64,000 nucleotides of DNA from Oculina patagonica (taxonomy: Eukaryota). The position numbers and the translations under genes were made by a program. The notes under the pieces were generated by a model, which was not told the DNA's origin, did no database searches, and saw only the letters and a program-made list of their open reading frames with translations. How positions within the stretch are numbered: the stretch's first letter is position 1; every line of letters starts with the position of its first letter. Shown piece after piece: positions 17,365 to 54,559 of this stretch. The DNA lies in assembly GCF_052425735.1 (NCBI RefSeq), contig NC_135763.1, positions 25,916,001 through 25,980,000 of the forward strand, given 5' to 3'.

Positions 17365-17441
17365 CTTTACATTACAGTTTGTAAATAAGTCCGCAAAAAT
17401 CCGGTAGTACAAGGCCCCCGCGCGGCATGAAATCACGCAAT

Positions 17442-25088: not shown

Positions 25089-26114
25089 CTTATTGTTGAC
25101 CCGATTTCCAAAAATGAAAATAACAACCAACAAAGTAGATATACAAAAGCTCCAGTAGACATAACACAAAACCACGATGGTGTCTGCTTCATTTGACCTC
25201 TTGATGAGCTGATAAAAGTTGACGCACATTAGTGGTATGTCCAACGAAATAATCACAAATAGGAGAAGCGAAAATACAGCATTGGCCAGCTCTACAATCT
25301 CGCATAGCTTCAGGTGTTCCTGCCGCAAGTAGGCGATGGTAAAAGGGTAGATTGATTCATTGGATATTTTATTTTGCAGAGTGGCAAACATCTTTTCCAG
25401 GAGCATGCAAGTGACGCAGAAGATCAGAGGTGGTAAAGTCCAAGCAAAGGAATCGAGGACTCCAAACGCTATTTCAGTCACTCGAACCGTTACGTACATG
25501 CCTTGGGTTTGATTCCATGGTGGAAAAATAGAGATAACGCCGTTGAAACGAACACTAAGAAGGATGATAACGATGGAATTGATCACTGCTGCTAAGCAAG
25601 CTACAGCCAAACCTTTCACTGCTTTCTTCCTCATCCCGTCAAGCTCGGGTGCTTTCGTTGCAAAGCTGGAAAGAAATTGGGCAAATCTCGATCGCCTTTC
25701 GTTCATGAGTGGCAAAACAAACAAGCAAACGGTTGTGCTACTTGCATTCTGAACATACCAAGCGGTGTTAACCAATAAGAAAGAAAAAGAACTCATGGAC
25801 GAGAAACCTATGTAAAGGTGACTTGTGACACCTATTACCACCATTAGCCATTGGCCCACAACGACAAGCGCGCTGAAGAAGCGCGAAACGTACATTGTCC
25901 TCCGACCACTGCAATCACCCAGTGCGGTTTCGCCGAAATATTGCCCCGTCAACTTCATAGCGAACAAAATCGGACGGAAGATCTCTGCAAGCTGCCTTAG
26001 ACGCTTTGATCTCATTTCCACTTCTCTCGTATATTCTTCGTTGTGAGCAGTATTTTCAGTCTCATTTGCATCTCTTTTTCTCATTTCCAGCACATGTATC
26101 GTTCGAGGAATCAT
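25089..26114 (-). CDS. Gustatory receptor-like gene B, large first exon
   Basis: 342 codons, clear paralogue of 2087-3106. Phase-0 donor AAG|GTAAGT at 25083-88. Confidence 0.85.
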
Positions 26115-27690: not shown

Positions 27691-28734
27691 TCAGGTGGAC
27701 GTATCGGCTTTTTTGTGTTTGATGTTTTGTCCTTGCTCCTGTTGAACGTCCCAAGCGTTCACTGAGGAACAGCTACAACAAGGCCACATCCTGTAATATT
27801 CCAACCTGAATGTCCTGTTGAGCACTCCGTATATGACTGGGTTGATTGCAGAACTGATTGACACCAAGAAGACATTAAGAAGATACACTCTTCTGGGTAA
27901 AGAGTAGTTTCCTGTGGCGGCGTCTGTGAACTCGATGACAAACACAGGGACCCAGCAAAGCGTAAAACCCAACACCATGGCGAATAGAGTCTTGGTGATG
28001 TTTACTTCTTCAACACTCAACCTTGAACTATGAGCACTTATCGAGTCGATTGATGAAAACCGTTGTCGATGCTTCTTCACTTTCAGAAACACTTTCGTGT
28101 AGCAAAATGTTATGACAGCAAATGGAATTACGACTATTACCAACCCCAACAGGCCAGTGTATACCTTGTCGGTGGTCTGATGATGGAATTCTAGGACGCA
28201 CGTGATCTTCCCAGGATGGAACTGGAAATAAGCCCAACCTGTCACCAGTGGTAAGCCGAGGAAGAAGGCAGCGGAGAAAACAACAGCCAACAGCGAGAAC
28301 ACGACGAACTTCCTTGTGAAGATTTTGCGGAATAGCCAAGGTTTAACCACGCGGCAATATCGGTTGAAAGCCAGTAAAGCGATCGTTTGCAAAGAAACAA
28401 AGGCCAAAAAGAGAACTGCAAAGCCATGAACTCCACACACTCTCTCTGAATATCTCCATTGGCCCACGAGCAGTACGCCCCAAACCAGCGGCATGCAAAA
28501 TGTTGCCATAGCGACGTCAGAAATGGCCAGTGCAAGAATGTATTGAAAGGTGACGCCTTGAAAACGTGGATTCTTGTAAAAAATCAAGCAGACAAGGATA
28601 TTACCAAGCAGGGCCATTAAATTGATTAAAATGAAGAGCGTCGTCTCTATAATGTAGTCAGCGGTACTCCTGGAAGACATTATCGCTACTAGATGATCAT
28701 AGGGACTTTCTTCAAAGGTGCTATTTGACGCCAT
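27691..28734 (-). CDS. Class A GPCR, melatonin-receptor-like cnidarian type
   Basis: 347 aa with seven TMs. GN, LAISD, NRY (in place of DRY), CWVP and NPVIY motifs. Intronless CDS. Confidence 0.92.
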   Translation of the reverse strand: MASNSTFEESPYDHLVAIMSSRSTADYIIETTLFILINLMALLGNILVCLIFYKNPRFQGVTFQYILALAISDVAMATFCMPLVWGVLLVGQWRYSERVCGVHGFAVLFLAFVSLQTIALLAFNRYCRVVKPWLFRKIFTRKFVVFSLLAVVFSAAFFLGLPLVTGWAYFQFHPGKITCVLEFHHQTTDKVYTGLLGLVIVVIPFAVITFCYTKVFLKVKKHRQRFSSIDSISAHSSRLSVEEVNITKTLFAMVLGFTLCWVPVFVIEFTDAATGNYSLPRRVYLLNVFLVSISSAINPVIYGVLNRTFRLEYYRMWPCCSCSSVNAWDVQQEQGQNIKHKKADTST

Positions 28735-34210: not shown

Positions 34211-35259
34211 CTACATTTCGTCTTGAATGTTTTCCAACACCCTCGACATGTTGAGCAGTGTTCCTTTTATGTCTTGCATACCGGTCAACAACTCACTTTT
34301 CTCGGTGTCGTAGTATCGGTCAAGGACATTCAAAGACCAAGGAATATTTTCCTTTCGCAACTCACTTGCAAAAAACCGAGCGAAGTTGATCACCTCCGTT
34401 TCGTTCAGTCCACCGTTCTTGTTGTCTGTCGGCTCCATGCTCCAAGGTAAGTCAGGATATTGCTGCTCTTGGTAAAGTCGGTTGCGTGTTTGATCGCTTC
34501 CCTGACATTGCTCCGACCGTTTTCGTGATCAGAAGTACCGTCTCCGCTCCAGTACTTCTGTCCTCCAATCTTCTTGTTTGGTCCTGAGGCATAAATGTGC
34601 CACTCAGCCATCATAAATGAATCGTTTCGATAGATGTCTTGATCGATTTCGTCGAGATCATTTGCTGTTTTTCCCGGTGATCCAAGAATGAGGATGCGAT
34701 TTGCGTTTTTCCCACCCGTAGCGCAAATCGCGGCAACCACCTCGGATGTCCAAAGATTGTATTTATCTGGCCTCATACGAAGACTTTCTCCTCCGCACTC
34801 ATCTAGCGCAAGCTCAGTAAACAGGTTGAAGCTCAGTCTGTAGTCTTTGTCCTTCAGTTGCGTTGCCACGGCTTTCCACCAATATATGTAATTTCGTCGG
34901 TCTTCATCAGTCGCGTATGCTTCAGCGTGATGGTGGATCCAAGAAATTATCGGCGTGACTCCAACTTCAAGACATTTATCGACTACGGTCGTCAAACTGG
35001 TGAGAAACTGGTGAATTGAGAGTTGTTGTATGGGGCCGAATACAGATCTGCCCTCGACCGGAGCCTCACGTTTCGAAAGCTGTTGGAGAAGATGTCTATG
35101 TTCTTGCCATTGTATTTTGACATACAACGGGTCCGCTGTCTTGAACCAGTTTGTTGAAAAACCATGTACGATCACCTCTCGATAATCTGCTGGGCTTATT
35201 GGCAGGGATGCATTTATGGCAGAAATAAAGCTAAAGACTGCAAGGAATGGGAGAATCAT
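34211..35259 (-). pseudogene. GH5-fold glycoside hydrolase-like gene, copy 1 (diverged, frameshifted)
   Basis: Paralogue of copies 2-4. Compensating frameshifts at ~35000-35120 and a frameshift near 34435. Confidence 0.85.
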
Positions 35260-35832
35260 TTTCCGAGATTAAAGAGGGTCTTTGGTGCAGTTTCTTATAA
35301 GGCGTTGTAAAAGGAGAGAGATATTTGATTGGATGGAAGAAGAGTGCTATTATCATAATATAATAACAATCTTTTGAACTCAATCCTTGGAATTTTCCAT
35401 TTTGATGGCGGGTGGTCTGTACTGCAATACAACACAAGCATTAAAGTAAACGAGCTTTGACACGTTTTGAGTCTGATTCTTGAGTCCTTTGATGATAAGA
35501 ATTTCAAAAAGTAAAAAGCCAAGATTAATTTTACTTTCAAGCTGTGATGCAGATGTTGACAATTATAGCAAGATAATCAGTATCACACGTGAATTTGACA
35601 TGCTGCATATGGCCTTGCGACTTGTACGGACTGGATGGAAATCAATTGACTTCGCGATATACTAGCAAGATTTTTCGTTACAACACCTCAAACACTGCAA
35701 TATTTCTGTCGTTTGTGATTGAAAGTTATTTTAAAATATATGCTTAGACCGAGATGCTCTCATAAGTTGGAAAACAAAACGGCTCGGCAATAACAAATAC
35801 TTGATGGCTCTTTTAGGTTCTAAATAAAGTCT

Positions 35833-35836
<4 letters not shown>

Positions 35837-35866
<30 letters not shown>
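35837..35866. repeat. (TA)n microsatellite
   Basis: About 15 TA units. Confidence 0.95.
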
Positions 35867-35869
<3 letters not shown>

Positions 35870-35921
35870 GCCCAATCAGCTTCCAAGAGCTGCGAGCGAT
35901 TTTCAAAATAAAATATGTGAC

Positions 35922-36165
35922 GAGGAGTGTGGCCGAGTGGTTTAGGGCGCTGGTGTTGTAATCCGGTGGTCCCCGGTTCAAGACTAGCTGGATTTGTTTC
36001 TCAGTTGTCCCGAGTTGAAATCCTCGGACACGCTTTGGTAGTTGGGATTTTTAACCATGTTATGTTCATTTAAAATATTCGTTTCCTCTGTTTCAGTGGC
36101 ATGCCTGCAAACTAGCTATCTCGAAGCTAAGTACATAGCACTATAAACAAGATTTACATTTTTTT
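35922..36165 (+). mobile_element. tRNA-derived SINE
   Basis: A-box TGGCCGAGTGG and B-box GGTTCAAGACT. Body shared with 5447-5700; tttaca-T tail. Confidence 0.8.
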
Positions 36166-38963
36166 ACGAAGTTTCTTATATCAAACGCTACTACTCGTGC
36201 GAAGTCAATTTATTTGAAGTTTAACCTAAGCCTTGTAGCATTTAGAAAAAAAAATGATCGGGTGACTGTAGCAACCTGATTTTTATTTGAGATAAGATGT
36301 GTTGCTTTTGTCTTGTAACGATTATTTTTGGGCAAAAAAGGAATATGTCACCGAGCATATGTCCCCGATGTCACAACCCGAGATGGTTAAAAATAACCGG
36401 TTTATTTTTTACTCCGGCGAGGTATTATTTAAGGCGTAAGACAATGCTTTTCTTCGTTGTTTTGATGTAGGAACGCTGAAGAAAAAGGATTACTAAACAA
36501 TAGGAAAAAGAGATTCCGAAAAAACACATCGGGGCTTAAACTGGTTATTCCTTTCGTTTTTGGTACTCCGAATAAAACAATCAATATGGGGGCAAAGCAA
36601 GCTTTACAATAGATTAAAGATTCCGAAAGTATGCATTGGGATTTTGTAATATTGTTTTATGGTACCGACAACTTTGCAACAACCCTTTTTACAACTTTAC
36701 TGCAAAGTTGGCTGAAATAAGTGAAGCCGAGGAAGAACATTTAAATAATTCGATAAATCCAGGCAACGCAATGACTTAAATAAATTGCTTTCCTCTATGA
36801 ATCTGAAACAAGATTGCGTAAACGCTCAGTCTAGCATTGGAGAAGTCTCAATCGGCAGCGTTGAAAAAGGGACTGAAACAAATGAAAAAAAGAAATAGTC
36901 CAAAAGCGATATCATCGTCGCAGATGGCTTATATCTGTCACATGTTGTTTTTTCTTCGATTTAATTGGCTGAGACAAAACTGTCCAATTTTTCTTAAATT
37001 GGACAGTATGTGCATTTTACCTGAAAGTCCTAATTGAAACTATCCAAATTTAATCCCAAATTGGACAGTCCTCAGAAATTAAGGAAAAATTGCTGCGCTG
37101 ACAATATAGGATTTACTGACAGCTATATAATTAAAGTTCTAATTTCGCGGTCCGCATGGAGTTGTTGCCGTAAACTCGTAGTTTCATCGCTGAGTCTTTT
37201 CTTTCTTTTTTTTTGTTACAATCAAAAGATAATAATAAACGAGATCGAAAATTGTTTACATCTATTACTCGTTAGAGTAACTACCAGTTTTTGCAGTTTT
37301 TCCGTTAATCGTGAGACAATTTTGTAGTAACAGCTAAAACCAGGACGTGCAACGGCTAAACGACGTGCAATGGCCTTCCTTGATATCATTTGTTAGTCGA
37401 GATAAATACAAAACTTGGAAAATAGCACTCATATAAGTACTATAAATTTCTAAAAAAAAAATGTGAAAGAACTGAGGTGCCAATGATAAGTGGCAGCTCC
37501 CCACTATCCAAACGAAGATGGGTGAGGTACAACTCGACTAAACAAATAATTCTGGCACGATCTATTCGGATTCTTGAAGGTATCAAGTTTGGCCTTATTA
37601 CTCTTTGTTATCCTCCATGATAAAAAAAAAAACATACAACAACACAGCTAAAATAAACATTCATTTTAAGTTTATTGCCTCGGCAGATCGAAAGATATAA
37701 ACTGTTTATTGGCGTTTAGATAAAGAGACACTGAAGTTTTCATAAATGGTGACTTTTTTTCTTTCAAATAGGAAGATAACAAATGACGAGTTTGTCGATG
37801 TCTAGTGTAATTTAATTGTTAGTTAGCTTTTAAAATTTTAGTCTTATACAAGTACACTGATGTTGTTGTTCAGGTGTCTGACGTTTTACATTCAGAATTG
37901 GTTATCAAGGCTCATTGTCAAGTTCCTATCGTTGGTACGTCATTATTGGACACGTTCAAACAAAAGCGGCGTTGGATATTAAAAAAATATTGGAATGCTT
38001 ATCCACTGTTGTCAGTAAAGCCTCGCTTGTTGTATTCCGGAACAAGATAATTAACTAACAATATCGAATTAATTTAAAAATTCTTGCCATATTTTTACTT
38101 CCTCGGTGACTGCTGAACTACGTACGTGTAAAGCAGTACACAATATGATTGATTCAACGTGTAAGGTTGTTTAAACACAAGCCATTGATGTCTTACATGA
38201 CACGATTGTTTTATTCCAGTAATGGGTATTGCTAAGCAAAAAAAGGCACAATTATATTAAACAGGTTGAAAAGAATTGTATTGGCTGGAATAATTTATTG
38301 CAATTTTGAATTTGCGTCGCGAATATTATATTTAAATAATCACGTTTATCCTATGCAGTACAGATGGAATTGCTCCCAAAAGCCTTGAGGCATAGAATAT
38401 TCAATTGAAGGGCTGATTGAAATCGCTCATGATCAGCTTTGAAAGGGGTCGAGCTTCCAACCCAAAATGCTCTTCGAACAGAAATCTATAATATTGAGAT
38501 CGGGATCGCGGTTCATCGATAAATCTCAAGAAGGCGGGGTTTGCTGCTGATAACATTTTTGTATGCTCTGTTCTGACAGCTGTGGTATGGCGGTTGCTTT
38601 TATAAAATCCGTAGAAACAGTGCTGATCCGAAAACAAACGAAGTAAAACATTTCAAAAGCAAACTTTAATGTTACCGCTTTACATTGAACTTTCTAATCA
38701 AACTGAATGTCTTCCAGGAATAAGTCCTTATTGTAGTCAGGACGCTTCTTAGAGAAATAAAAAGCGTACATCAATGGTATTGCTTCAGTGATAGACTAAT
38801 TTATACTCCCCTTTTAAGTCTAGTAGTACCTCTGTGAATCACATAAATCTTGAAATAACCCTGATTTTGATTAGCCTTCTGAATTCCTCTTTTTATCATT
38901 ACCCTGACGAATACACGATATGTTCATTATAGTTCCTTATGCTACATTCTATCGTTACATGAT

Positions 38964-40033
38964 CTACATTGTGTCTTGAATGTTCTCCAACACCCTCGAC
39001 ATGTTGAGCAATGTTCCTTTAATGTCTTGCATAACGGTCAACCACTCGCTATTCCCGGTGTCGTAGTATCGGTCAAGGACATTCAGAGACCAAGGAATAT
39101 TTTTCTTTCGCAACTGACTTGCAAAAAATCGAGCGAAGTTGATCACCTCTCTTTCTTCCAGTGCACCACACGGTCGTTGTCTGCCGGCATCCATGCTCCT
39201 TGATAGGTGAGGAAATTTCTCTTTTTGGTAAAATCAGTTGCCTGTTTGATCGCTTTCCTGACATTATCACGACCATTCTTGTCATCGGGAGTACCGTCCC
39301 CCTTCCAGTACTTCTGTCCTCCTTTGTCCTTGTTTGGTCCCGATGCGTAAAGATGCCACTCAGCCATCAAGTACGGATCATTCTGATAGATCTTCTGGTC
39401 AATCTTGTCGAGGTCCTCTGCCGTTTTTCCTGGTGAACCTAAAATGAGAATACGTTTTGCATTGTTCCCGCCCGTTGCACGGATTGCTGCAACCACATCA
39501 GATGTCCAACGATTGTATTTGTCTGGCCTCATACGAAGACTTTCTTCACAAATTGTCTTCTGCCCTCCGCACCCGTATTTCCCTAGCTCAGTAAACAGAT
39601 TAAAGCTAAGTCTGAAGTCCCTGTTCTTCAGTTGCTTTGCCACGGTTGTCCACCAAGTGACGTAATTTTGTCGGTCTTCTTCAGTTGAGTATGCCTCAGC
39701 TTGGTGGTGGATCCAAGAAATTATTGGCGTTACGCCAACTTCGAGACATTTGTCGACTACCTTCGTCAAACTGGCGAGAAACTCGGTGAAGCCAGTGGTG
39801 TTGTATGGAGCTGAAAACAGATCCGCCCTGCACCGGAGCCTCACGTTTCGAAAGTTCTTCGAGAAGATGTCTTCGATATTCTTGTCATTGTATTTTGCCA
39901 ACGGGTCCGCTGTCTTGAACCAGTTTGTTGAAAAACCCTGACCGATCACGTCTTGGTAATCTGCTGGACTTATTGGCACGGATGCACTTGCCGCTGTAAT
40001 AGCGACGAGGACTGCAAAATATAAGACGATCAT
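38964..40033 (-). pseudogene. GH5-like gene copy 2 (single +2 frameshift near 39170)
   Basis: gcaccacacggtcg versus gcaccaccgtcg in copies 3 and 4; otherwise near-identical. Could be a sequencing error. Confidence 0.8.
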
Positions 40034-40875
40034 TTTTGCAAAGTGTAAGAGAAAGGATTGCAGGGGCAGTATTTAACATAGCGCTGCGAACGAAAGGTCA
40101 ACTTTGATTGGCTGGAAGAAGAATATACTTCAACAATCTAATTTCATGATCTTTCGGCTCATATCATCATCTTAAAAACCCGGTGCTATGACAATAATAG
40201 TGATAGCATACAAACTGGGGCAAATATTTGTACCTAAACTATCATGCGGTCGTCTAGTTGTCTTTGCACTGAGGGCAGATTTTTAATGTAATTTTCAAAA
40301 AACGGAAAGTTTAAATGAACTACGTTAAATCTCTTTGCAAAAATTTCAAAATAAATCACATAAGTTAGCATATAATGTGAAATTGTAAGTTGACGAGAAT
40401 GCTTTTGGCTCATATAAACGGGGCGAATATCTGTATCTACAATATCTTGCGGCTGATACCGCCAAGATGTCTTGGCATTGAGTGCCAAGCATTTTTCAAA
40501 TGATCTACATCAACGGACTAAGCTAAAGCCCATGGTCAACAAAACAATCACTCCGGATCCGAGCTTAGTTATTAGTTTAGCCCGATTTTTATTTGCATGT
40601 CTTTGTTTGAATAGCTAGATTTATCACTGCTCAGTTACACCTTTTCCACTTTTTATCGTTTTAAAGCAAGCCATTCCCGTCATCTTAAAGCTGTATCCAA
40701 TATAAATGCTGATTATATTTCGCGATCCGGAGAGATCAAAGCAGGGTCGTTGACGTGAATTCGTATTAATTGTTTATCGCTGATAATGTAACGACGACGA
40801 AAACGAAATCGAAAACGAGATCGAAAATAGTTTGTAGCTTATACCCGATAAAAAATAACTACCGAAAAACTTTAA

Positions 40876-41465
40876 CCCTATTCAGACCGGGCTTTTTTTG
40901 GTCTTTTTTGACCGGGGGGGGGCGGATTCCGCCCCCCCCCCTCCGTAACTTCCAGAATATTTAAGCAATCACAATGAAACTTACAGGATATATAGTATGT
41001 CCCAAAATCTATCTTTTGGTATATGTCACGTGGGATGATGACGTCACATCACGTGACAATTACATCATAATGTCAAAACAGCCGCCATCTTGGATCCGCC
41101 ATCTTGGATTTCGAATTTTTTTCAAAACGTCAGAAAACCGCCCAAAATTTACTGGAAAATACTCAAAACCAATAAAAATGTGCTTAAAACCCGTAAAAAG
41201 GTAAAAATAATTGCTTTAAAGTTATTTTTCATAAATAGAAACACCAAAATTACAAATTTGGGAAAACATGCCTGTCAAAATGCCGTTGCCATGGTGACGT
41301 CTAGTTTCTGACACAACAACCTACCCTACCAAATTATTCCCAGATAAATTTTAGATAAAGTCGCAAAGTTTGGCAGCGTTTGGTTGAATATTAAAAAAGT
41401 TATAAGCGTTCAAAGTCGGCGCGGGTACTTTCCGCCCACCCCCCCCCCCCCCGGTCTGGATAGGG
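40876..41465. mobile_element. piggyBac-type MITE
   Basis: TTAA TSDs and CCCTAT.CAGACCGGG TIRs. The empty TTAA site is present in the other units (~46519, ~51572). Confidence 0.92.
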
Positions 41466-44400
41466 TTAATGACCATGAAAAAAATACTTATAGTGCGTTA
41501 AAGGATCGGGCTTATTTTTGGATTTTAATTTGCATGCATTATAAAAATGTTTGGTTTATATAAGAGGGATACCTCGTCTGCAATTTCTCATGTGTATACA
41601 AGACTATCAAATGGTATAACTCTCTGAACACAACGATATAACGCCCTACAGCTAGTCATTAAATGAACTTTACATGTCTCTGAGCAAATTCCGATATGTT
41701 TAAATGCAAAGCAAGCACTTCAATAGGAGGCTTATATTCGAAGAAGTTATATTTTTCTTTAAAAGGTATTAGGTAAAAAACTCCTGCACGTGGATGGTGT
41801 ATATATAATAAGCTCGAGAGTTGAAAGCGCCTATTTAAGCACACATTCATGCACTTGTTGTGCTAGCACGCTTACCGAATTAAACTTACCCTGACCCGGA
41901 CCGCATGGATGTAACAAGAGGCAAAAATAACAGCATAGTTGAAAGGAAGAGAACACCAAACAAGTCAAAGTTAGAGACAAGCTGTACAGCTGAATTTAAA
42001 GTTATTTTTTTCTTTGGCAGCTGTCGACATAACATGGGTACATTAAGGTATGATAGCAAAAAGGCAGAAGGATTGGTATATGTTCTAGAACGTTCTGGGA
42101 AAATAATTTGAAACTTGAGATAAGCAAATACAGCTTTGCAACGTTCTTTGACAGGGAATGTTGTCCTTAAATTTCATTTACCAGCCTCTTCATGTAGAGA
42201 TTATATTTCGCACATCAAAGTAGTGATAGAAAAATGAAATAACAAAATCCAATGGTCAAGAAAAATATTGAAGTAAATACTTGGGTCTCCACAGTATGCC
42301 TCGATATATATATATATATATTTTTTCAATTTATCAAAATAAGCCAATATACCGACTGAATAAGCAATCTAGACGCATACTGTTTAAACAGGACACGGAA
42401 TATTTGTTTCGGCGACCGGCAAGTGTCTACATAATAACGACATCAACCAAAAATTCGTTATTCATATCAATAAAAATTTACTCAATTTCGTAAATTCTGT
42501 TAGAAGTAATAAAAAATATATGGCAGCTTTATCCGAGCTTTAATCTACTTGGCATGCACACTGTGAAGATACTTTTCCACGAGCGATCGCATTTCTATAT
42601 TTCATTCCCCCGATCCAAATTGTAACAAAAAGTCTGCGTCCACATTATGTTAGCTGAACTGAAAAAAGACATTGGGTGGTGAGATGGTGGTCCATTTTAA
42701 GTCCTGAATTTTCAATGCTGGTTGCCACTTGGTGATGTAAACTCAGCCTGCGCTTACTTCTTATTTCTTTCAGCCCGTCGATAAAAAAGTCAACCACATC
42801 ATCGACCTGCTGTTGCAATTTCACTGACCGATAAAATACAGAAAAAAAAAGTAAACGTTGTATAGAAAATAATTGCAACATTTGATGTCGGCAAAACAGA
42901 TCGTTATTTTAGCACTAGACATTATTTTGCATCCATGATACGTGGCTACGCTATAAGGCCTTACTACTCAATGTATCAATTTGTAGACAATTTCGACTTA
43001 TGATAAAGAGTCAAGAGGGTCCTGAAGGGGTAAAATGGGTCCGCATGGAGTTGTTGCCGTCAACTCGTGGTCTCATCGCTGATTCTTTTCTTTCTTTTTT
43101 TGATATCATTTGCAAGTCGAGATAAATACAAAATCTTGGAAAATAGCACTCATATAAGTACTATAAATTTCTAAAAAAAAAAACGGTGAAAGAGCTGAGG
43201 CGTCCATGATAAGTGACAGCTCCCCACTATCCAAACGAAGATGGGCGAGGTACAACTCGACTAAACAAATAACTCTGGCACGATCTATTCGGATTCTTGA
43301 GGGTATCAAGTTTGGCCTTATTACTCTTTGTTATCCTCCATGATAAAAATTCATAAAACAACACAGGTAAAATAAACATTCATTTTAAGTCTATTGCCTC
43401 AGCAGATCGAAAAATATAAATTGTTTATTGCGTTTAGATAAAGAGATTGTGAAGTTTTCATAAATGGTGACTTTTTCTTTCAAATAGGAAGATAAAAAAT
43501 GACGAGTTTGGTCGATGTCTAGTGTAATGTGTTAGGTAGCTTTTAAAATTCTAGTCTTATATAAGTACACTGATGTTGTTGTTCAAGTGTCTGACATTTT
43601 ACATTCAGAATTGGTAAAACAAAAGCGGCGTTGGATATTAAAAAAAATATATTTGAATGCTAATCCACTGTTGTCAGTAATGCCTCGCTTGTTGTATTTC
43701 GGAACAAGATAATTAACTAACAATATCGAATTCATTCAAATATTCTTGCCATACTTTTGCTTCCTCGCTGACTGCTGAACTACGTACGTATAAAGTAGCA
43801 CACAATGGTTGATTCAAGGTGTAAGGTTGTCTAAACACAAGCCATTGATGTCTTGTATGACACGATTGTTTCATTCCAGTAATGGGTATTGGTAAGCAAA
43901 AAAGCCACATTCATATTACACAGTGTGAAGAGAGTTGTATTGGCTGGAATAATTTGGTGTTGCGTCGCAAATTATATTTAAATAATCACGTTTATCCTAT
44001 GCAGTACAGATGGAATAGCTCCCAAAAGCCTTGAGGCATAGAAGATTCAATTAAAGGGCCGACTGAAATCGCTCATGATCAGCTTTGAAAGAGGTGGAGC
44101 TTCCAACCCAAAAGGCTCTTCGAACAGAAATCTATAATATTGAGATCGGGATCGCGGTTCATCGATAAATCTCAAGAAGGCGGGGTTTGCTGCTGATAAC
44201 ATTTTTGTATGCTCTGTTCTGACAGCTGTGGTATGGCGGTTGCTTTTATAAAATCCGTAGAAACAGTGCAGATCCGAAAACAAACGAAGTAAAACATTTC
44301 AAAAGCAAACTTTAATGTTACCGCTTTACATTGAACTTTCTAATCAAACTGAATGTCTTCCAGGAATAAGTCCTTATTTTAGTCAGGACGCTTCTTAGAG

Positions 44401-44609
44401 AAATAAAAAGCGTACATCAATGGTATTGCTTCAGTGATAGACTAATTAATACTCCCCTTTTAAGTCTAGTTGTACCTCTGTGAATCACATAAATCTTGAA
44501 ATAACCCTGATTTTGATTAGCCTTCTGAATTCCTCTTTTTATCATTACTCTGACGAATACACTATATGTTCATTATAGTTCCTTATGCTACATTCTATCG
44601 TTACATGAT

Positions 44610-45677
44610 CTACATTGTGTCTTGAATGTTCTCCAACACCCTCGACATGTTGAGCAATGTTCCTTTAATGTCTTGCATAACGGTCAACCACTCGCTATTC
44701 CCGGTGTCGTAGTATCGGTCAAGGACATTCAGAGACCAAGGAATATTTTTCTTTCGCAACTGACTTGCAAAAAATCGAGCGAAGTTGATCACCTCTCTTT
44801 CTTCCAGTGCACCACCGTCGTTGTCTGCCGGCATCCATGCTCCTTGATAGGTGAGGAGATTTCTCTTTTTGGTAAAATCAGTTGCCTGTTTGATCGCTTT
44901 CCTGACATTATCACGACCATTCTTGTCATCGGGAGTACCGTCCCCCTTCCAGTACTTCTGTCCTCCTTTGTCCTTGTTTGGTCCCGACGCGTAAAGATGC
45001 CACTCAGCCATCAAGAACGGATCATTCTGATAGATCTTCTGGTCAATCTTGTCGAGGTCCTCTGCCGTTTTTCCTGGTGAACCTAAAATGAGAATACGTT
45101 TTGCATTGTTCCCGCCCGTTGCACGGATTGCTGCAACCACATCAGATGTCCAACGATTGTATTTGTCTGGCCTCATACGAAGACTTCCTTCACAAATTGT
45201 CTTCTGCCCTCCGCACCCGTATTTCCCTAGCTCAGTAAACAGATTAAAGCTAAGTCTGTAGTCCCTGTTCTTCAGTTGCTTTGCCACGGTTGTCCACCAA
45301 GTGACGTAATTTTTTCGGTCTTCTTCAGTTGAGTATGCCTCAGCTTGGTGGTGGATCCAAGAAATTATTGGCGTTACGCCAACTTCGAGACATTTGTCGA
45401 CTACCTTCGACAAACTGGCGAGAAACTCGGTGAAGCCAGTGGTGTTGTATGGAGCTGAAAACAGATCCGCCCTGCACCGGAGCCTCACGTTTCGAAAGTT
45501 CTTCGAGAAGATGTCTTCGATATTCTTGTCATTGTATTTTGCCAACGGGTACGCTGTCTTGAACCAGTTTGTTGAAAAACCCTGACCGATCACGTCTTGG
45601 TAATCTGCTGGACTTATTGGCAAGGATGCACTTGCTGCTGTAATAACGACGAGGACTGCAAAATATAAGACGATCAT
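44610..45677 (-). CDS. Secreted GH5-fold (cellulase-family) protein, copy 3, intact, 355 aa
   Basis: Signal peptide, then NVRL, IISWIHH, FNLFTE, AIRATGGNN..RIL, WHLY and GAWMP. Intronless. Confidence 0.9.
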   Translation of the reverse strand: MIVLYFAVLVVITAASASLPISPADYQDVIGQGFSTNWFKTAYPLAKYNDKNIEDIFSKNFRNVRLRCRADLFSAPYNTTGFTEFLASLSKVVDKCLEVGVTPIISWIHHQAEAYSTEEDRKNYVTWWTTVAKQLKNRDYRLSFNLFTELGKYGCGGQKTICEGSLRMRPDKYNRWTSDVVAAIRATGGNNAKRILILGSPGKTAEDLDKIDQKIYQNDPFLMAEWHLYASGPNKDKGGQKYWKGDGTPDDKNGRDNVRKAIKQATDFTKKRNLLTYQGAWMPADNDGGALEEREVINFARFFASQLRKKNIPWSLNVLDRYYDTGNSEWLTVMQDIKGTLLNMSRVLENIQDTM

Positions 45678-48600
45678 TTTGCAAAGTGTAAGAGAAAGGA
45701 TTGCAGGGGCAGTATTTAACATAGCGCTGCGAACGAAAGGTCAACTTTGATTGGCTGGAAGAAGAATATACTTCAACAATCTAATTTCATGATCTTTCGG
45801 CTCATATCATCATCTTAAAAACCCGGTGCTATGACAATAATAGTGATAGCATACAAACTGGGGCAAATATTTGTACCTAAACTATCATGCGGTCGTCTAG
45901 TTGTCTTTGCAATGAGGGCAGATTTTTAATGTACTTTTCAAAAAACGGAAAGTTTAAATGAACTACGTTAAATCTCTTTGCAAACATTTCAAAATAAATC
46001 ACATAAGTTAGCATATAATGTGAAATTGTAAGTTGACGAGAATGCTTTTGGCTCATATAAACGGGGCGAATATCTGTATCTACAATATCTTGCGGCTGAT
46101 ACCGCCAAGATGTCTTGGCATTGAGTGCCAAGCATTTTTCAAATGGTCTACATCAACGGACTAAGCTAAAGCCCATGGTCAACAAAACAATCACTCCGGA
46201 TCCGAGCTTAGTTAATAGTTTAGCCCGATTTTTATTTGCATGTCTTTGTTTGAATAGCTAGATTTATCACTGTTCAGTTACACCTTTTCCACTTTTTATC
46301 GTTTTAAAGCAAGCCATTCTCGTCATCTTAAAGCTGCATGTATCCAATATAAATGCTGATTATATTTCGCGATCCGGAGAGATCAAAGCAGGGTCGTTGA
46401 CGTGAATTCGTATTAATTATTTATCGCTGATAATGTAACGACGACGAAAACGAAATCGAAAACGAGATCGAAAAGAGTTTGTAGCTTATACCCGATAAAA
46501 AATAACTACCGAAAAAATTTAATGACCTTGAAAGAAATACTTATAGTGCGTTAAAGGATCGGGCTTATTTTTGGATTTTAATTTGCATGCATTATAAAAA
46601 TGTTTGGTTTATATAAGAGGGATACCTCGTCTGCAATTTCTCATGTGTATACAAGACTATCAAATGGTATAACTCTCTGAACACAACGATATAACGCCCT
46701 ACAGCTAGTCATTAAATGAACTTTACATGTCTCTGAGCAAATTCCGATATGTTTAAATGCAAAGCAAGCACGTCAATAGGAGGCTTATATTCGAAGAAGT
46801 TATATTTTTCTTTAAGAGGTATTAGGTAACAAAGTCCTGCACGTGGCTGGTGTTTATATAATAAGCTCGAGAGTTGAAAGCGCCTATTAAAGCACACATT
46901 CATGCACTTGTTGTGCTAGCACGCTTGCCTAATTAAACTTACCCTGACCCGGACCGCATGGATGTAACAAGAGGCAAAAATAACAGCATAGTTGAAAGGA
47001 AGAAAACACCAAACAAGTCAAAGTTAGAGACAAGCTGTACAGCTGAATATAAAGTTATTTTTTTTTCTTTGACAGCAGTCGACATAGCGTGGGTACATTA
47101 AGGTATGGTAGCAAAAAGACAGAAGGATTGGTATATGTTCTAGAACGTTCTGGGAAAATAATTTTAAAACTTGAGATAAGCAAATACAGCTTTGCAACGT
47201 TCTTTGACAGGGAATGTTGTCCTTAAATTTTTATTTACCAGCCTCTTCATGTAGAGATCATATTTCGCACATCAAAGTAGTGATAGAAAATTGAAATAAC
47301 AAAATCCAATGGTCAAGAAAAATATTGAAGTAAATACTTGGGTCTCCACAGTATGCCTCGATATATATATATATATATTTTTTCAATTTATCAAAATAAG
47401 CCAATATACCGACTGAATAAGCAATCTAGACGCATACTGTTTAAACAGGACACGGAATATTTGTTTCGGCGACCGGCAAGTGTCTACATAATAACGTCAT
47501 CAACCAAAAATTCGTTATTCATATCAATAAAAATTTACTCAATTTCGTAAATTCTGTTAGAACTAATAAAAAAATATATGGCAGCTTTATCCGAGCTTTA
47601 ATCTACTTGGCAAGCACACTGTGAAGATACTTTTCCACGAGCAATCGCATTTCTATATTTTATTCCCCCGATCCAAATTGTAACAAAAAGTCTGCGTCCA
47701 CATTATGTTAGCTGAACTGAAAAAAGACATTGCGTGGCGAGATGTTGGTCCATTTTAAGTCCTGAATTTTCAATGCTGGTTGCCACTTGGTGATGTAAAC
47801 TCAGCCTGCGCTTACTTCTTATTTCTTTCAGCCCGTCGATAAAAAAGTCAACTACATCATCGACCTGCTGTTGCAATTTCACTGACCGATAAAATACAGA
47901 AAAAAAAGTAAACGTTGTATAGAAAATAATTGCAACATTTGATGTCGGCAAAACAGATCGTTGTTTTAGCACTAGACATTATTTTGCATCCATGATACGT
48001 GGCTACGCTATAAGGCCTTCTACTCAATGTATCAATTTGTAGACAATTTTGACTTATGATAAAGAGTCAAGAGGGTCCTGAAGGGGTAAAATGGGTCCGC
48101 ATGGAGTTGTTGCCGTCAACTCGTGGTCTCATCGCTGATTCTTTTCTTTCTTTTTTTGATATCATTTGCAAGTCGAGATAAATACAAAATCTTGGAAAAT
48201 AGCACTCATATAAGTACTATAAATTTCTAAAAAAAAAAAACGGTGAAAGAGCTGAGGCGTCCATGATAAGTGACAGCTCCCCACTATCCAAACGAAGATG
48301 GGCGAGGTACAACTCGACTAAACAAATAACTCTGGCACGATCTATTCGGATTCTTGAGGGTATCAAGTTTGGCCTTATTACTCTTTGTTATCCTCCATGA
48401 TAAAAATTCATAAAACAACACAGGTAAAATAAACATTCATTTTAAGTCTATTGCCTCAGCAGATCGAAAAATATAAATTGTTTATTGCGTTTAGATAAAG
48501 AGATTGTGAAGTTTTCATAAATGGTGACTTTTTCTTTCAAATAGGAAGATAAAAAATGACGAGTTTGGTCGATGTCTAGTGTAATGTGTTAGGTAGCTTT

Positions 48601-49666
48601 TAAAATTCTAGTCTTATATAAGTACACTGATGTTGTTGTTCAAGTGTCTGACATTTTACATTCAGAATTGGTAAAACAAAAGCGGCGTTGGATATTAAAA
48701 AAAATATATTTGAATGCTAATCCACTGTTGTCAGTAATGCCTCGCTTGTTGTATTTCGGAACAAGATAATTAACTAACAATATCGAATTCATTCAAATAT
48801 TCTTGCCATACTTTTGCTTCCTCGCTGACTGCTGAACTACGTACGTATAAAGTAGCACACAATGGTTGATTCAAGGTGTAAGGTTGTCTAAACACAAGCC
48901 ATTGATGTCTTGTATGACACGATTGTTTCATTCCAGTAATGGGTATTGGTAAGCAAAAAAGACACATTCATATTACACAGTGTGAAGAGAGTTGTATTGG
49001 CTGGAATAATTTGGTGTTGCGTCGCAAATTATATTTAAATAATCACGTTTATCCTATGCAGTACAGATGGAATAGCTCCCAAAAGCCTTGAGGCATAGAA
49101 GATTCAATTAAAGGGCCGACTGAAATCGCTCATGATCAGCTTTGAAAGAGGTGGAGCTTCCAACCCAAAAGGCTCTTCGAACAGAAATCTATAATATTGA
49201 GATCGGGATCGCGGTTCATCGATAAATCTCAAGAAGGCGGGGTTTGCTGCTGATAACATTTTTGTATGCTCTGTTCTGACAGCTGTGGTATGGCGGTTGC
49301 TTTTATAAAATCCGTAGAAACAGTGCAGATCCGAAAACAAACGAAGTAAAACATTTCAAAAGCAAACTTTAATGTTACCGCTTTACATTGAACTTTCTAA
49401 TCAAACTGAATGTCTTCCAGGAATAAGTCCTTATTTTAGTCAGGACGCTTCTTAGAGAAATAAAAAGCGTACATCAATGGTATTGCTTCAGTGATAGACT
49501 AATTAATACTCCCCTTTTAAGTCTAGTTGTACCTCTGTGAATCACATAAATCTTGAAATAACCCTGATTTTGATTAGCCTTCTGAATTCCTCTTTTTATC
49601 ATTACCCTGACGAATACACTATATGTTCATTATAGTTCCTTATGCTACATTCTATCGTTACATGAT

Positions 49667-50734
49667 CTACATTGTGTCTTGAATGTTCTCCAACACCCTC
49701 GACATGTTGAGCAATGTTCCTTTAATGTCTTGCATAACGGTCAACCACTCGCTATTCCCGGTGTCGTAGTATCGGTCAAGGACATTCAGAGACCAAGGAA
49801 TATTTTTCTTTCGCAACTGACTTGCAAAAAATCGAGCGAAGTTGATCACCTCTCTTTCTTCCAGTGCACCACCGTCGTTGTCTGCCGGCATCCATGCTCC
49901 TTGATAGGTGAGGAGATTTCTCTTTTTGGTAAAATCAGTTGCCTGTTTGATCGCTTTCCTGACATTATCACGACCATTCTTGTCATCGGGAGTACCGTCC
50001 CCCTTCCAGTACTTCTGTCCTCCTTTGTCCTTGTTTGGTCCCGACGCGTAAAGATGCCACTCAGCCATCAAGAACGGATCATTCTGATAGATCTTCTGGT
50101 CAATCTTGTCGAGGTCCTCTGCCGTTTTTCCTGGTGAACCTAAAATGAGAATACGTTTTGCATTGTTCCCGCCCGTTGCACGGATTGCTGCAACCACATC
50201 AGATGTCCAACGATTGTATTTGTCTGGCCTCATACGAAGACTTCCTTCACAAATTGTCTTCTGCCCTCCGCACCCGTATTTCCCTAGCTCAGTAAACAGA
50301 TTAAAGCTAAGTCTGTAGTCCCTGTTCTTCAGTTGCTTTGCCACGGTTGTCCACCAAGTGACGTAATTTTTTCGGTCTTCTTCAGTTGAGTATGCCTCAG
50401 CTTGGTGGTGGATCCAAGAAATTATTGGCGTTACGCCAACTTCGAGACATTTGTCGACTACCTTCGTCAAACTGGCGAGAAACTCGGTGAAGCCAGTGGT
50501 GTTGTATGGAGCTGAAAACAGATCCGCCCTGCACCGGAGCCTCACGTTTCGAAAGTTCTTCGAGAAGATGTCTTCGATATTCTTGTCATTGTATTTTGCC
50601 AACGGGTCCGCTGTCTTGAACCAGTTTGTTGAAAAACCCTGACCGATCACGTCTTGGTAATCTGCTGGACTTATTGGCACGGATGCACTTGCTGCTGTAA
50701 TAGCGACGAGGACTGCAAAATATAAGACGATCAT
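49667..50734 (-). CDS. Secreted GH5-fold (cellulase-family) protein, copy 4, intact, 355 aa
   Basis: Same motifs as copy 3; 4 aa differences. Confidence 0.9.
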   Translation of the reverse strand: MIVLYFAVLVAITAASASVPISPADYQDVIGQGFSTNWFKTADPLAKYNDKNIEDIFSKNFRNVRLRCRADLFSAPYNTTGFTEFLASLTKVVDKCLEVGVTPIISWIHHQAEAYSTEEDRKNYVTWWTTVAKQLKNRDYRLSFNLFTELGKYGCGGQKTICEGSLRMRPDKYNRWTSDVVAAIRATGGNNAKRILILGSPGKTAEDLDKIDQKIYQNDPFLMAEWHLYASGPNKDKGGQKYWKGDGTPDDKNGRDNVRKAIKQATDFTKKRNLLTYQGAWMPADNDGGALEEREVINFARFFASQLRKKNIPWSLNVLDRYYDTGNSEWLTVMQDIKGTLLNMSRVLENIQDTM

Positions 50735-52445
50735 TTTTGCAAAGTGTAAGAGAAAGGATTGCAGGGGCAGTATTTAACATAGCGCTGCGAACGAAAGGTC
50801 AACTTTGATTGGCTGGAAGAAGAATATACTTCAACAATCTAATTTCATGATCTTTCGGCTCATATCATCATCTTAAAAACCCGGTGCTATGACAATGATA
50901 GTGATAGCATACAAACTGGGGCAAATATTTGTACCTAAACTATCATGCGGTCGTCTAGTTGTCTTTGCACTGAGGGCAGATTTTTAATGTACTTTTCAAA
51001 AAACGGAAAGTTTAAATGAACTACGTTAAATCTCTTTGCAAAAATTTCAAAATAAATCACATAAGTTAGCATATAATGTGAAATTGTAAGTTGACGAGAA
51101 TGCTTTTGGCTCATATAAACGGGGCGAATATCTGTATCTACAATATCTTGCGGCTGATACCGCCAAGATGTCTTGGCATTGAGTGCCAAGCATTTTTCAA
51201 ATGATCTACATCAACGGACTAAGCTAAAGCCCATGGTCAACAAAACAATCACTCCGGATCCGAGCTTAGTTATTAGTTTAGCCCGATTTTTATTTGCATG
51301 TCTTTGTTTGAATAGCTAGATTTATCACTGCTCAGTTACACCTTTTCCACTTTTTATCGTTTTAAAGCAAGCCATTCTCGTCATCTTAAAGCTGTATCCA
51401 ATATAAATGCTGATTATATTTCGCGATCCGGAGAGATCAAAGCAGGGTCGTTGACGTGAATTCGTATTAATTGTTTATCGCTGATAATGTAACGACGACG
51501 AAAACGAAATCGAAAACGAGATCGAAAAGAGTTTGTAGCTTATACCCGATAAAAAATAACTACCGAAAAACTTTAATGACCATGAAAAAAATACTTATAG
51601 TGCGTTAAAGGATCGGGCTTATTTTTGGATTTTAATTTGCATGCATTATAAAAATGTTTGGTTTATATAAGAGGGATACCTCCTCTGCAATTTCTCATGT
51701 GTATACAAGACTATCAAATGGTATAACTCTCTGAACACAACGATATAACGCCCTACAGCTAGTCATTAAATGAACTTTACATGTCTCTGAGCAAATTCCG
51801 ATACGTTTAAATGCAAAGCAAGCACTTCAATAGGAGGCTTATATTCAAGAAGTTATATTTTTCTTTAAAAGGTATTAGGTAAAAAACTCCTGCACGTGGA
51901 TGGTGTATATATAATAAGCTCGAGAGTTGAAAGCGCCTATTTAAGCACACATTCATGCACTTGTTGTGCTAGCACGCTTACCGAATTAAACTTACCCTGA
52001 CCCGGACCGCATGGATGTAACAAGAGGCAAAAATAACAGCATAGTTGAAAGGAAGAGAACACCAAACAAGTCAAAGTTAGAGACAAGCTGTACAGCTGAA
52101 TTTAAAGTTATTTTTTCTTTGGCAGCTGTCGACATAACATGGGTACATTAAGGTATGATAGCAAAAAGGCAGAAGGATTGGTATATGTTCTAGAACGTTC
52201 TGGGAAAATAATTTGAAACTTGAGATAAGCAAATACAGCTTTGCAACGTTCTTTGACAGGGAATGTTGTCCTTAAATTTCATTTACCAGCCTCTTCATGT
52301 AGAGATTATATTTCGCACATCAAAGTAGTGATAGAAAAATGAAATAACAAAATCCAGTGGTCAAGAAAAATATTGAAGTAAATACTTGGGTCCCCACAGT
52401 ATGCCTCGATATATATATATATATATTTTTTTTTCAATTTATCAA

Positions 52446-53849
52446 TGACAATGATAAATAATGACAGCGTACAGGAAAAAACACAGCTGCGAAACAACAC
52501 TGCTTGCGCTGATAGAAGATTGGAAATTGGCCGCTGATACAAAGCAACTTGTTTATATTCTATTTACAGATATGAGCAAGGCCTTTGACAGCTTGAGCCA
52601 TTCCTTGACGATAAAGAAGCTGGAGGCTTACGGCTTTGGAAGACGTTCTCTTGAACTAATGCGATCATTTTTTGAGAACAGACATAACAGAGTAAAATTG
52701 GGCGAAATCACGAGTGACTGGATAAAGATGAAACGTGGATGCCCTCAAGGATCATCCTTCGGACCCCTACTTTGGAACATGTTTCAAAGTGATCTGTCAT
52801 CACATGTAAAGGACGCAAACTTAACTATGTACGCTGACGACCACCAAATGTACGTTAAGGGAACGGACCACGAAACAGTTGGACGCAGTTTGAAAATTCA
52901 TGGTAGCCAAGCCCTGGCTTGGTACTCAAAGAACTATTTAAAAGCAAATCCAGACAAGTTCCAGTCGCTAATTATCAATCCAAGAAAACTCGATAAGGAC
53001 AAGAGCGACACAGCCCTCAGCATCGATGACATAGACATTACAAAAACAGAACAAATCAAGCTACTGGGAGTTCACATCGACGATAATCTTGAGTTCACCG
53101 AGCATATCCGTGTGCTATGCATTAAGGCCAGCCAGAAAGTCGGAGTACTTTCTCGTCTTCGCAATTTAATACCTTGCAAGGCTAAGCTATTACTGTATAA
53201 GACGTTCATTTTACCTCACCTAACATACTGCCATCTAACATGGCAGTTTTGTAAGTCATCGGACAAAAGGAAACTTGAGAGAATTCAGGAACGCGCATTA
53301 AGAGTTATATTCAGATCCCACGCCGAAACCTATAACGAACTCTTGGGACGGGCAGATTTGCCCACACTATATAATAGGCGTTTACAAGATACAGCAACGC
53401 TTATGTATAAGGTCAAGAACGGGCTTGCGCCAGACAACGTCTCTGCCCTTTTTGTCCGCAAAGACACTACACACTCGCTTAGAAACAGTGATTTTGTCTT
53501 ACCGCGTTTTGATACTAAACGCTACGGGAAACATTGTATCAGATATCTTGGACCACTTCTATGGTCAAAATTAAGCAAAGAACTGAAAAACTCGCCGACT
53601 GTGGCTGCATTCAAAACTAAAATTAGAAAACTCAATCTATCGGACTACGTGGACAACAATAGTAACTGTTGCAAACTCTGTTGCGCTTAAGACATTGTAA
53701 ATATTAGTTTTTAGTTTTTAGTTAAGTGTTTTAAATATTTTTAGCTTAGCATTATTAATAGTATTTTGGGTATTTTAATTGTGTCCCCAATTAGTCCATA
53801 AGGGCTAAACACACAGACACGGTAATAAAGTTTTTATTATTATTATTAT
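52446..53849 (+). mobile_element. CR1/L2-group LINE, 5'-truncated, uninterrupted RT frame 52461-53690
   Basis: DMSKAFD, GCPQGS..GPLL, YADD, then AATAAA + (TTA)n tail. The empty site tttatcaa|aataagcc occurs in the other units. Confidence 0.92.
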
Positions 53850-54559
53850 AATAAGCCAATATACCGACTGAATAAGCAATCTAGACGCAGACTGTTTAAA
53901 CAGGACACGGAATATTTGTTTCGTGCGACCGACACTGAGTGTCTACATAATAACGACATCAACCAAAAATTCGTTATTTATATAAATAAAAATTTACTTA
54001 ATTTCGTAAATTCTGTTAGAAAAAAACTATGACAGCTTTATCCGAGCTTTAATCTACTTGGCATGCACACTGTGAATATAATTTTCCACGAGCGATCGCA
54101 TTTCTATATTTTATTCCCCCGATCCAAATTGTAACAAAAAGTCTGCGTCCACATTATGTTAGCTGAACTGAAAAAAGACATTGGGTGGTGAGATGTTGGT
54201 CCGTTTTAAGTCCTGAATTTTCAATGCTGGTTGCCACTTGGCGATGTAAACTCAGCCTGCGCCTACTTCTTATTTCTTGCAGCCGGTCGATAAAAAAGTC
54301 AACCACATCATCGACCTGTTGTTGCAATTTCATGTTCACATGTCTAATAAAACAGCAGGTTACATGTTTATTGTTTATTTTCGGATTAAATAAAAAAAAA
54401 ATGAAAATACAATTGCGTGTCCTTGGATAGCGTTTATAAAGTTTTGATAATGTGCGGTAGAATTTCACAGTAAAAATCGTCTCTGCACTCGCAGAGCCTT
54501 CTTCCTCTGCAAGATTGGTAACGGTATGCAGAAGTTCGCGTTACATCCCAGCTAAAGAG

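Follow-up and report, generated by a model that had tools for sequence, protein, structure and literature searches.

A tandem array of genes of the glycoside hydrolase (GH) family 5 type on a chromosome of the coral Oculina patagonica appears, on balance and with some reserve, to be a young triplication, accompanied by one older pseudogene, of a long-domesticated family of secreted GH5-fold proteins that would have been derived from bacteria and would act as non-canonical glycanases. The stretch analyzed, which we call the window and to whose coordinates all positions refer, comprises 64 kb at 25.92-25.98 Mb of a 38.5-Mb contig in a 529-Mb genome. The most interesting aspect of this family is its active site without a nucleophile, which is conserved in bacteria, anthozoans and bivalves. 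The history proposed is that a gene from bacteria would have entered an early marine-animal lineage, that two replacements (Ala for the nucleophile Glu, and Thr, Ile or Val for the Asn of the 'NE' motif) would already have been present in the bacterial ancestors, and that the gene would afterwards have been subject to birth-and-death duplication under purifying selection.

Four open reading frames (ORFs) on the minus strand within 34.2-50.7 kb match the Pfam model PF00150 (Cellulase/GH5) with E values from 1e-10 to 3e-17, scoring 63.7 bits in the intact copies and 41.5 bits in the pseudogene, copy D, where the gathering cut-off is 23.5, and not one of them has an intron. An earlier note on this DNA had spoken of a four-fold amplification of intronless copies; as a count of intronless GH5 ORFs this stands, but as a count of amplified copies it is too high. 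Only two of the four, A and B, are intact, at 99.6% identity; C is frameshifted and D is an old pseudogene of another lineage. Copy A (49667-50734, minus strand; PF00150 E value 2.6e-17) is an intact intronless gene of 355 amino acids, and copy B (44610-45677, minus strand) differs from it by four substitutions, all non-synonymous. Copy C (38967-40033, minus strand) is 99.2% identical to A and carries a 2-bp insertion near 39171-39172, following nucleotide 861 of the coding sequence, which destroys the frame after residue 287 and brings a stop at 39143, leaving an open frame of 39143-40033 and a product truncated to 296 amino acids; copy C may have become a pseudogene recently, or the insertion may be polymorphic or an error of the assembly. 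Copy D (34214-35259, minus strand; open frame 34405-35259) has five indels (+4, -3, -1, -18, -1), four of them frame-breaking, is 17% divergent from copy A, and shares 91.6% nucleotide identity with a paralogue 56 kb away (L004, whose protein P0002 bears the NCBI label 'cellulase/esterase CelE-like'); its divergence, its indels and its closeness to L004 therefore mark it, by comparison of the copies, as an older pseudogene of the L004/P0002 lineage, outside the recent amplification.

Self-BLAST of the window shows that a unit of 5.05-5.7 kb has recently been triplicated. Two full units of 5,053 bp (41466-46518 and 46519-51572) and an 872-bp partial third make up the tandem array (41466-52445), and a more diverged unit bearing copy C occupies 37380-40875. 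Every unit contains a segment of about 490 bp related to a long interspersed nuclear element (LINE); the array is bordered by a LINE reverse-transcriptase ORF (52461-53690, plus strand), and the 3' flank of this LINE (53843-54332) recurs within the units. The amplification is real but, judging by the state of its copies, young and already decaying, and in place of the ongoing dosage amplification that had been suggested, birth-and-death fits better, given that among the three young copies one has lost its frame and that there are several pseudogenes in the cluster.

The protein of copy A begins with MIVLYFAVLVAITAASA, a hydrophobic, signal-peptide-like N-terminus ending in A-S-A, and the proteins of the family are predicted to be secreted. 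The AlphaFold2 (AF2) model of copy A (pLDDT 95.4, pTM 0.93) is a (beta/alpha)8 barrel with eight beta/alpha units, and among its structural neighbors (Foldseek, VIA) the top matches are all GH5, led by GH5_4/GH5_25, with VIA Z scores of 30-34, root-mean-square deviations of 2.2-3.0 Å and identities of 14-19%, whereas structures of GH5_2 (1tvn, 1g0c) and GH5_8 (2whl) reach Z scores of 22-23. Within the PDB the closest match by sequence is C. thermocellum CelE, whose IRASGGNNDKR aligns with the IRATGGNNxKR of the family, and in this respect the bacterial GH5-type motif noticed earlier is confirmed. The enzymes of GH5_4/GH5_25 (CelE, CtCel5E, T. maritima Cel5A, F. nodosum Cel5A) have in common with the family the (beta/alpha)8 fold, the beta2 Arg, the beta4 acid/base Glu, the beta6 His-x-Tyr, the beta8 Trp and the IRxxGGxNxxR pattern; unlike them, the family has Ala for the nucleophile Glu, Thr for the 'NE' Asn, the extra invariant residues Glu228, Arg70 and Asn289, and, in animals, a Cys-Cys loop. 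By profile and structure these enzymes are the nearest, and the family would be a divergent relative of them, at an identity of only 14-19%. No NCBIfam model matches any member.

The landmarks of the active site in copy A are Thr-Glu on beta4, Glu-x-His-x-Tyr on beta6 and Gly-Ala-Trp on beta7, and in the profile alignment the G-A-W-M-P of the family falls where FnCel5A and CtCel5E have their nucleophile motif, G-E-F, and likewise on the CtCel5E mutant E314A (4u5i). Residues were counted over 223 full-length members, about 118 from the animal clade and 105 of bacterial type. The nucleophile position on beta7 (residue 283) is Ala in 215, Glu in 7 and Ser in 1. The 'NE' Asn of GH5 binds the 2-hydroxyl (2-OH) of the substrate; at its beta4 position (residue 151) there is Thr in 148 members, Ile in 57, Val in 12 and Leu in 4 (221/223 together), with Thr in animals and Ile, Thr or Val in bacteria. 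The remainder of the site is strictly kept: the acid/base Glu152 in 222 members, Arg68 (beta2) in 222, Arg70 in 221, the beta6 residues Glu228, His230 and Tyr232 in 218, 223 and 211, Trp284 in 220, Asn289 in 215, and Trp317 (beta8) in 179. Of the eight canonical GH5 residues of the pocket, six are kept in this alignment and two, the nucleophile and the 2-OH-binding Asn, are missing; Glu228, Arg70 and Asn289 are in this comparison family-specific, near-invariant polar residues. The seven members with Glu at the nucleophile position come from at least 4-5 lineages, and six of these members belong to the animal clade. All seven keep Thr151 and Glu152, and six of the seven keep Glu228, so that among these seven variants and the 223 members no covariation of the nucleophile-position Glu with loss of Glu228 was seen. 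After beta4, a Cys-x6-8-Cys loop is present in the animal clade only; P0121, the bacterial protein that is the sister of that clade, has the loop without the cysteines.

With such residues the family protein is, on the evidence of the alignment, not a canonical retaining cellulase, and we consider it moderately probable that it is catalytically competent, that is, an active secreted glycanase with a rearranged center. In known GH pseudoenzymes it is usually the acid/base residue that is lost, and because of this catalysis is preferred here over mere binding. A serious rival, although in our judgement the less probable reading, is that these are non-catalytic carbohydrate-binding pseudoenzymes, comparable to the GH18 chitinase-like lectins, which would serve in secreted pattern recognition or in organizing mucus. 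Such a role would account for the nucleophile Glu being missing in 215 of the 223 members and for the replacement of the 2-OH-binding Asn as well, recognition proteins typically form expanded secreted families with rapid duplication, and the four differences between A and B are all non-synonymous. It accounts less well for the retention of Glu152, Glu228, His230, Arg68 and Arg70 across bacteria and animals at 26-30% identity, for the independent change of Ala to Glu in at least four lineages in which the remaining site is intact, and for the surroundings of some bacterial members, where an adjoining gene for a sulfatase or for a PgaC-like synthase points to glycan turnover.

If the glycanase is active, a relocated carboxylate could replace the nucleophile, with Glu228 acting either as the nucleophile itself or as general base to a water molecule lodged where Ala283 leaves room. 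Glu228 precedes the beta6 His by two residues and should therefore lie on the same face of the strand, adjoining beta7; this position is read only from the strand register, as is the placement of Glu228, Arg70 and Asn289 with respect to subsite -1. Alternatively, catalysis would be substrate-assisted and directed at a 2-acetamido sugar, in which case Ala283 and Thr151 would leave a space into which the N-acetyl group could fit, and Glu228 or Asn289, together with Tyr232, would orient that group. GH18, GH20, GH84 and GH85 are substrate-assisted glycosidases of TIM-barrel fold, and the GH18 chitinase-like lectins are catalytically altered forms of such glycosidase folds. By analogy with those enzymes, the family would combine the lack of an enzyme nucleophile with an acid on beta4, a Tyr, and a second carboxylate or amide that could position the acetamido group; unlike them, it belongs to a different family or clan, and the mechanism is proposed from the residue pattern. 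We know of no GH5 member that uses a substrate-assisted mechanism. The target would be a microbial, algal or mucus glycan, and a role in feeding or in surface defense through the control of surface microbes is plausible in suspension-feeding hosts.

That the copies encode ordinary retaining endo-beta-1,4-glucanases which digest cellulose, as the NCBI label and the earlier note would imply, is in contrast very improbable. There is a match to the Pfam Cellulase model, the best PDB sequence match is CelE, and cellulase activity has been found in extracts of coral tissue (PMC5710165). The endoglucanase label is nevertheless doubtful because the catalytic nucleophile is absent, and to this must be added the altered 'NE' motif, the identity of 14-19% to any characterized GH5, and the fact that the cellulase-like coral genes of that same study are GH9. 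The automated annotation is thus probably misleading for studies of carbohydrate digestion in corals.

It is well known that glycosidase genes of bacteria can become fixed in the genomes of invertebrates. For GH5 (Aspeborg et al., 2012, PMC3526467) the horizontally acquired animal genes comprise those of GH5_2, from plant-parasitic nematodes and from beetles, that of GH5_8 from the coffee berry borer, and the GH5_10 mannanases of molluscs and arthropods. Like these, the coral family would be secreted, of GH5 fold, of probable bacterial origin, and fixed and duplicated in invertebrates. Unlike them, it lacks the nucleophile, and its putative transfer would be much older and common to Anthozoa and bivalves. 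The nematode and beetle cellulases that the earlier note had cited as documented acquisitions are of another kind, the coral family being of neither the GH5_2 nor the GH5_8 lineage (GH5_2 structures reach a Z score of about 23, those of GH5_4/GH5_25 30-34). Cnidaria are not among the GH5-bearing metazoans of the 2012 subfamily survey (PMC3526467); animal GH5 genes have been described as non-monophyletic and probably of bacterial or fungal origin (PMC6011409), in a study that does not describe the anthozoan-bivalve clade, and the 41 candidates for horizontal gene transfer in corals reported elsewhere (PMC4878875) do not include the family of this array. Our searches of the literature for nucleophile-less GH5 proteins, GH5 pseudoenzymes or cnidarian GH5 returned nothing specific, nor did they return a paper describing the family.

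In protein searches the named animal holders are confined to Anthozoa and Bivalvia: Oculina and Pocillopora among Scleractinia, Actinia, Actinostola and Nematostella (two genes) among Actiniaria, Dendronephthya for Octocorallia, and three Mytilus species and Mercenaria for Bivalvia; the homologues outside Oculina have 50-79% identity. Further members with 45-75% identity lie on transcript-length or Mb-scale contigs that carry no taxon assignment. On one of these contigs, from another sample (L022:1369-7074, within 483 kb of eukaryote-like sequence with sparse ORFs), three to four intronless members stand in tandem with a mutual identity of 65-66%, and tandem expansion therefore recurs in other hosts. 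The presence across Anthozoa which had been proposed as a check is accordingly found in both Hexacorallia and Octocorallia, and the event is neither recent nor specific to corals, as homologues from Actiniaria, other Scleractinia, an octocoral and bivalves fall into one clade.

The bacterial members come from a scan of GTDB limited by a pattern taken from a 7-sequence alignment, and the nine loci found are a lower bound. The named ones belong to Pseudomonadota, Verrucomicrobiota, Bacteroidota and Campylobacterota; three Kistimonas species have 41-43% identity and a metagenome-assembled genome (MAG) of Opitutales 45%, and the distant members, at 26-29%, are from Leeuwenhoekiella, Flavobacterium, an epsilonproteobacterium and 'bacterium 3DAC'. 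Within the Endozoicomonadaceae the gene is present in 3 of 63 species genomes, all three of them Kistimonas. The closest non-animal protein is P0121 (L023:7039-9960), with 973 amino acids and 59% identity over the domain, in which the GH5-like domain is joined to cadherin-like, Big_9 and DUF4114 domains; its contig neighbors are PatA_N, DUF4058, Peptidase_S13 and glycosyltransferase family 2 (GT2) genes, so the protein is bacterial, and its contig has a cyanobacterial look.

A quick maximum-likelihood tree of 145 representatives and a more careful one of 95 sequences under LG+C20 both contain one animal/eukaryote clade (Shimodaira-Hasegawa-like approximate likelihood-ratio test, SH-aLRT, 99; ultrafast bootstrap/aLRT 93/78). 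P0121 is the sister of this clade (97/88), and the two belong to a wider assemblage in which the Kistimonas and Opitutales groups are also found, with the Bacteroidota and Campylobacterota members in a second, deeply separated bacterial clade. When five canonical GH5 sequences (three from bacterial genomes and two endoglycoceramidase-like genes of Oculina patagonica) were used as outgroups, the root fell between bacterial clades I and II (98/96), with the animals at 97/90 and P0121 plus animals at 100/99; the midpoint root likewise falls between the two bacterial clades, and animals and P0121 nest in bacterial clade II. The octocoral sequence is the sister of one Nematostella paralogue (100/98), and this pairing, together with the existence of two old groups of coral paralogues, indicates that the family was present, and probably duplicated, in the anthozoan ancestor. 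Neither the LG+C20 tree nor the tree with outgroups resolves the branching of bivalves and cnidarians within the animal clade.

An ancient bacterial origin, not peculiar to corals, seems on these sequence comparisons quite likely, because bacterial diversity is far deeper, the midpoint and outgroup roots agree, the named animal distribution is patchy and the nearest characterized relatives are bacterial. The transfer most likely predates the split between Hexacorallia and Octocorallia, for which PMC7853314 gives about 600 million years (Myr) ago, and it may predate the divergence of cnidarians and bivalves. The opposite course, in which the family would be ancestrally eukaryotic or animal and vertically inherited with many losses, and in which bacteria, or at least P0121 and Kistimonas, would have acquired it from animal hosts, is improbable, although not negligibly so. 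The animals do form a single clade, P0121 is nearer the coral protein (59%) than are the Mytilus proteins (52%), and Kistimonas, which includes all the Endozoicomonadaceae holders, are symbionts of invertebrates. Yet the bacterial members are spread over at least four phyla with a much deeper divergence (26-45% identity) than that of the animal clade, both roots fall between two bacterial clades, the named animal holders are restricted to Anthozoa and Bivalvia, the nearest structural relatives are bacterial GH5_4/GH5_25, and the Cys-Cys loop is missing from P0121 and from other bacteria. The earlier note had proposed horizontal transfer from bacteria and had held that a broadly distributed eukaryotic clade would speak against it: the nesting within bacterial clade II agrees with the transfer, the root is insecure, and an eukaryotic clade is found in part, in that Anthozoa and bivalves form one clade.

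Several observations weigh against the reading of a bacterially derived, domesticated glycanase. (i) As to origin, the outgroup branches are very long, and in an approximately unbiased (AU) test the tree with all bacteria on one side, which places the root on the animal stem and thereby allows the animal origin, is not rejected (delta lnL 5.9, p=0.35); the result being non-significant, the direction of transfer cannot be claimed as shown. (ii) Many members of the animal clade are contigs or transcripts with no taxon assigned, and the intronless state is not diagnostic of origin, since host neighbors in the window are single-exon too. (iii) As to function, a missing nucleophile is equally to be expected of a non-catalytic, lectin-like pseudoenzyme, the assignment as a glycanase would for every member follow from the residue pattern, and across the bacterial gene neighborhoods there is no consistent clue to the substrate.

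These neighborhoods are varied. In Kistimonas and a relative the order is glmS-glmU / TrmB - gene - META/DUF4377; in the Opitutales MAG the gene is beside a fusion of a sulfatase with a 3-keto-disaccharide hydrolase; and in bacterium 3DAC (L021:2127-7064) a GGDEF cyclase, the GH5-like gene, a degenerate GGDEF protein and a PgaC/IcaA-like GT2 follow one another, the last scoring far below the equivalog cut-off. The 3DAC arrangement resembles an exopolysaccharide synthase operon, and this gene order did not recur in the relatives checked. The remaining bacterial members sit amid housekeeping genes. The contexts in Kistimonas and its relative (glmS-glmU and the sugar regulator TrmB) and in 3DAC (the synthase and the GGDEF proteins) are weak hints of a chemistry of N-acetylglucosamine (GlcNAc), and only leads.

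Taken to its furthest point, the bacterial-origin reading would make of the family a distinct GH5 lineage with a rebuilt clan GH-A machinery, in which Glu228 or the N-acetyl group of the substrate replaces the nucleophile; a single bacterial acquisition by early marine animals would have been kept for more than 500 Myr in anthozoans and bivalves as an abundantly expressed secreted enzyme acting on a poly-GlcNAc-, peptidoglycan- or chitin-like glycan, with occasional reversions of Ala to Glu giving back a classical hydrolase. This extended form is tentative, and as a whole rather doubtful. In any case, the loss of the nucleophile in 215 of 223 members along with the strict conservation of the remaining pocket predicts either a new catalytic solution in clan GH-A or a conserved non-enzymatic role, and the age and host range of the family, with Anthozoa, bivalves and symbiont bacteria among the holders, would make it a useful case for the recruitment of microbial enzymes by early animals.

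That the genes are bacterial contaminants, or reached Oculina patagonica alone by a very recent transfer, as the intronless ORFs and the bacterial-type homologues might suggest, has practically no probability and is effectively refuted by host integration, paralogues, base composition, polyadenylated messenger RNA (mRNA) and anthozoan orthologues. The array lies on a 38.5-Mb chromosome amid host genes and LINEs, and the paralogues are distributed over three chromosomes. Copy A has a GC content of 0.466 and a GC content at third codon positions (GC3) of 0.522, values close to those of a neighboring G protein-coupled receptor (GPCR) gene (0.452 and 0.526). The transcripts are colinear with the genome and polyadenylated, with an ATTAAA signal, and there are orthologues across Anthozoa. 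The earlier judgement that contamination is unlikely and that the setting is that of an animal chromosome is therefore upheld; the ORFs around the array are of GPCR, receptor-like, LINE, zf-RVT and THAP type.

The unit transcribed from copy A, or from sisters almost identical to it, is placed at 49350-50745 (minus strand), with a 3' untranslated region of about 317 nt, a poly(A) site near 49350 and a 5' end at about 50737-50745. In contigs from three public runs the coverage is confined to 49350-50737 at depths of 138-2444, with flanks near zero, and the contigs, which are colinear with the genome, end at 50721-50737. One of them shows 20 loose T before 49350, corresponding to a minus-strand poly(A) tail, and another retains a remnant of the SMART template-switch oligonucleotide; from the poly(T) overhang, this remnant and the gene-confined coverage, the three runs, labeled 'RNA?', were treated as complementary DNA. 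An ATTAAA polyadenylation signal (49368-49373, minus strand) lies 18 nt upstream of the poly(A) site, and the colinear contigs, the poly(T) and this signal together indicate that the mRNA is unspliced and polyadenylated. The poly(A) expression that had been named as a check is thus observed for copy A or its near-identical sisters. A putative core promoter (50771-50812, minus strand), recognized from its motifs, would consist of a CCAAT (50812-50808) 75 nt and a TATA-like TTAAATA (50777-50771) 40 nt 5' of the ATG.

The consensus of the RNA-type contigs shows single-nucleotide polymorphisms (SNPs) of the copy C type (50073, 50244 and 50371; region 49873-50371), and the 2-bp insertion of copy C was seen in no RNA contig of the three runs. 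The SNP pattern suggests shared polymorphism or gene conversion among the units, or a frameshift private to the assembled individual, and the frameshift of copy C may be individual-specific, unexpressed or an assembly error.

In copy B a mechanical ORF of 370 amino acids, reaching up to 45722, arises from an in-frame upstream ATG. The run of A directly before the start codon differs by one base between the copies (50734-50780 and 45677-45722), and where the run is shorter, as it is in copy B and also in the RNA-type contig X1 ('left out 1' at 50734), the upstream ATG falls in frame; this ATG is probably 5' of the transcription start because it overlaps the TATA-like TTAAATA. An antisense ORF of 152 amino acids inside copies A and B (49679-50137 and 44622-45080, plus strand) in all likelihood arises mechanically from the sequence of the coding strand.

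Genome-wide, Oculina patagonica has about seven intact intronless paralogues on three chromosomes. Five of them, with four pseudogenes or fragments, form a cluster of 175 kb on this chromosome; one more is on contig C5 and two on contig C2. Decayed copies with in-frame stops flank both ends of the cluster (G000:C6:25836727-25837790 and 26010984-26011397; L010-L012). The intact coral paralogues fall into two old groups, and dN/dS among them, taken pairwise, is 0.20-0.28. Another pair of intronless GH5 genes, arranged head to head and encoding 494 and 507 amino acids (G000:C4:14936338-14939855; L042 and L043), carries Glyco_hydro_5_C and looks to be of the endoglycoceramidase type (GH5_27-like), unrelated to the family of the array.

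The rest of the window is occupied by host-type features, among them a single-exon 7tm_1 (rhodopsin-type) GPCR ORF (27691-28734, minus strand), two single-exon Trehalose_recp-like (gustatory-receptor-like) ORFs (1937-3106 and 25059-26114, minus strand), a THAP-domain ORF (16726-17544) with other ORFs close by, and zf-RVT ORFs. As the neighboring GPCR and receptor-like genes of the host are themselves single-exon, the intronless state of the GH5 copies is not unusual here.

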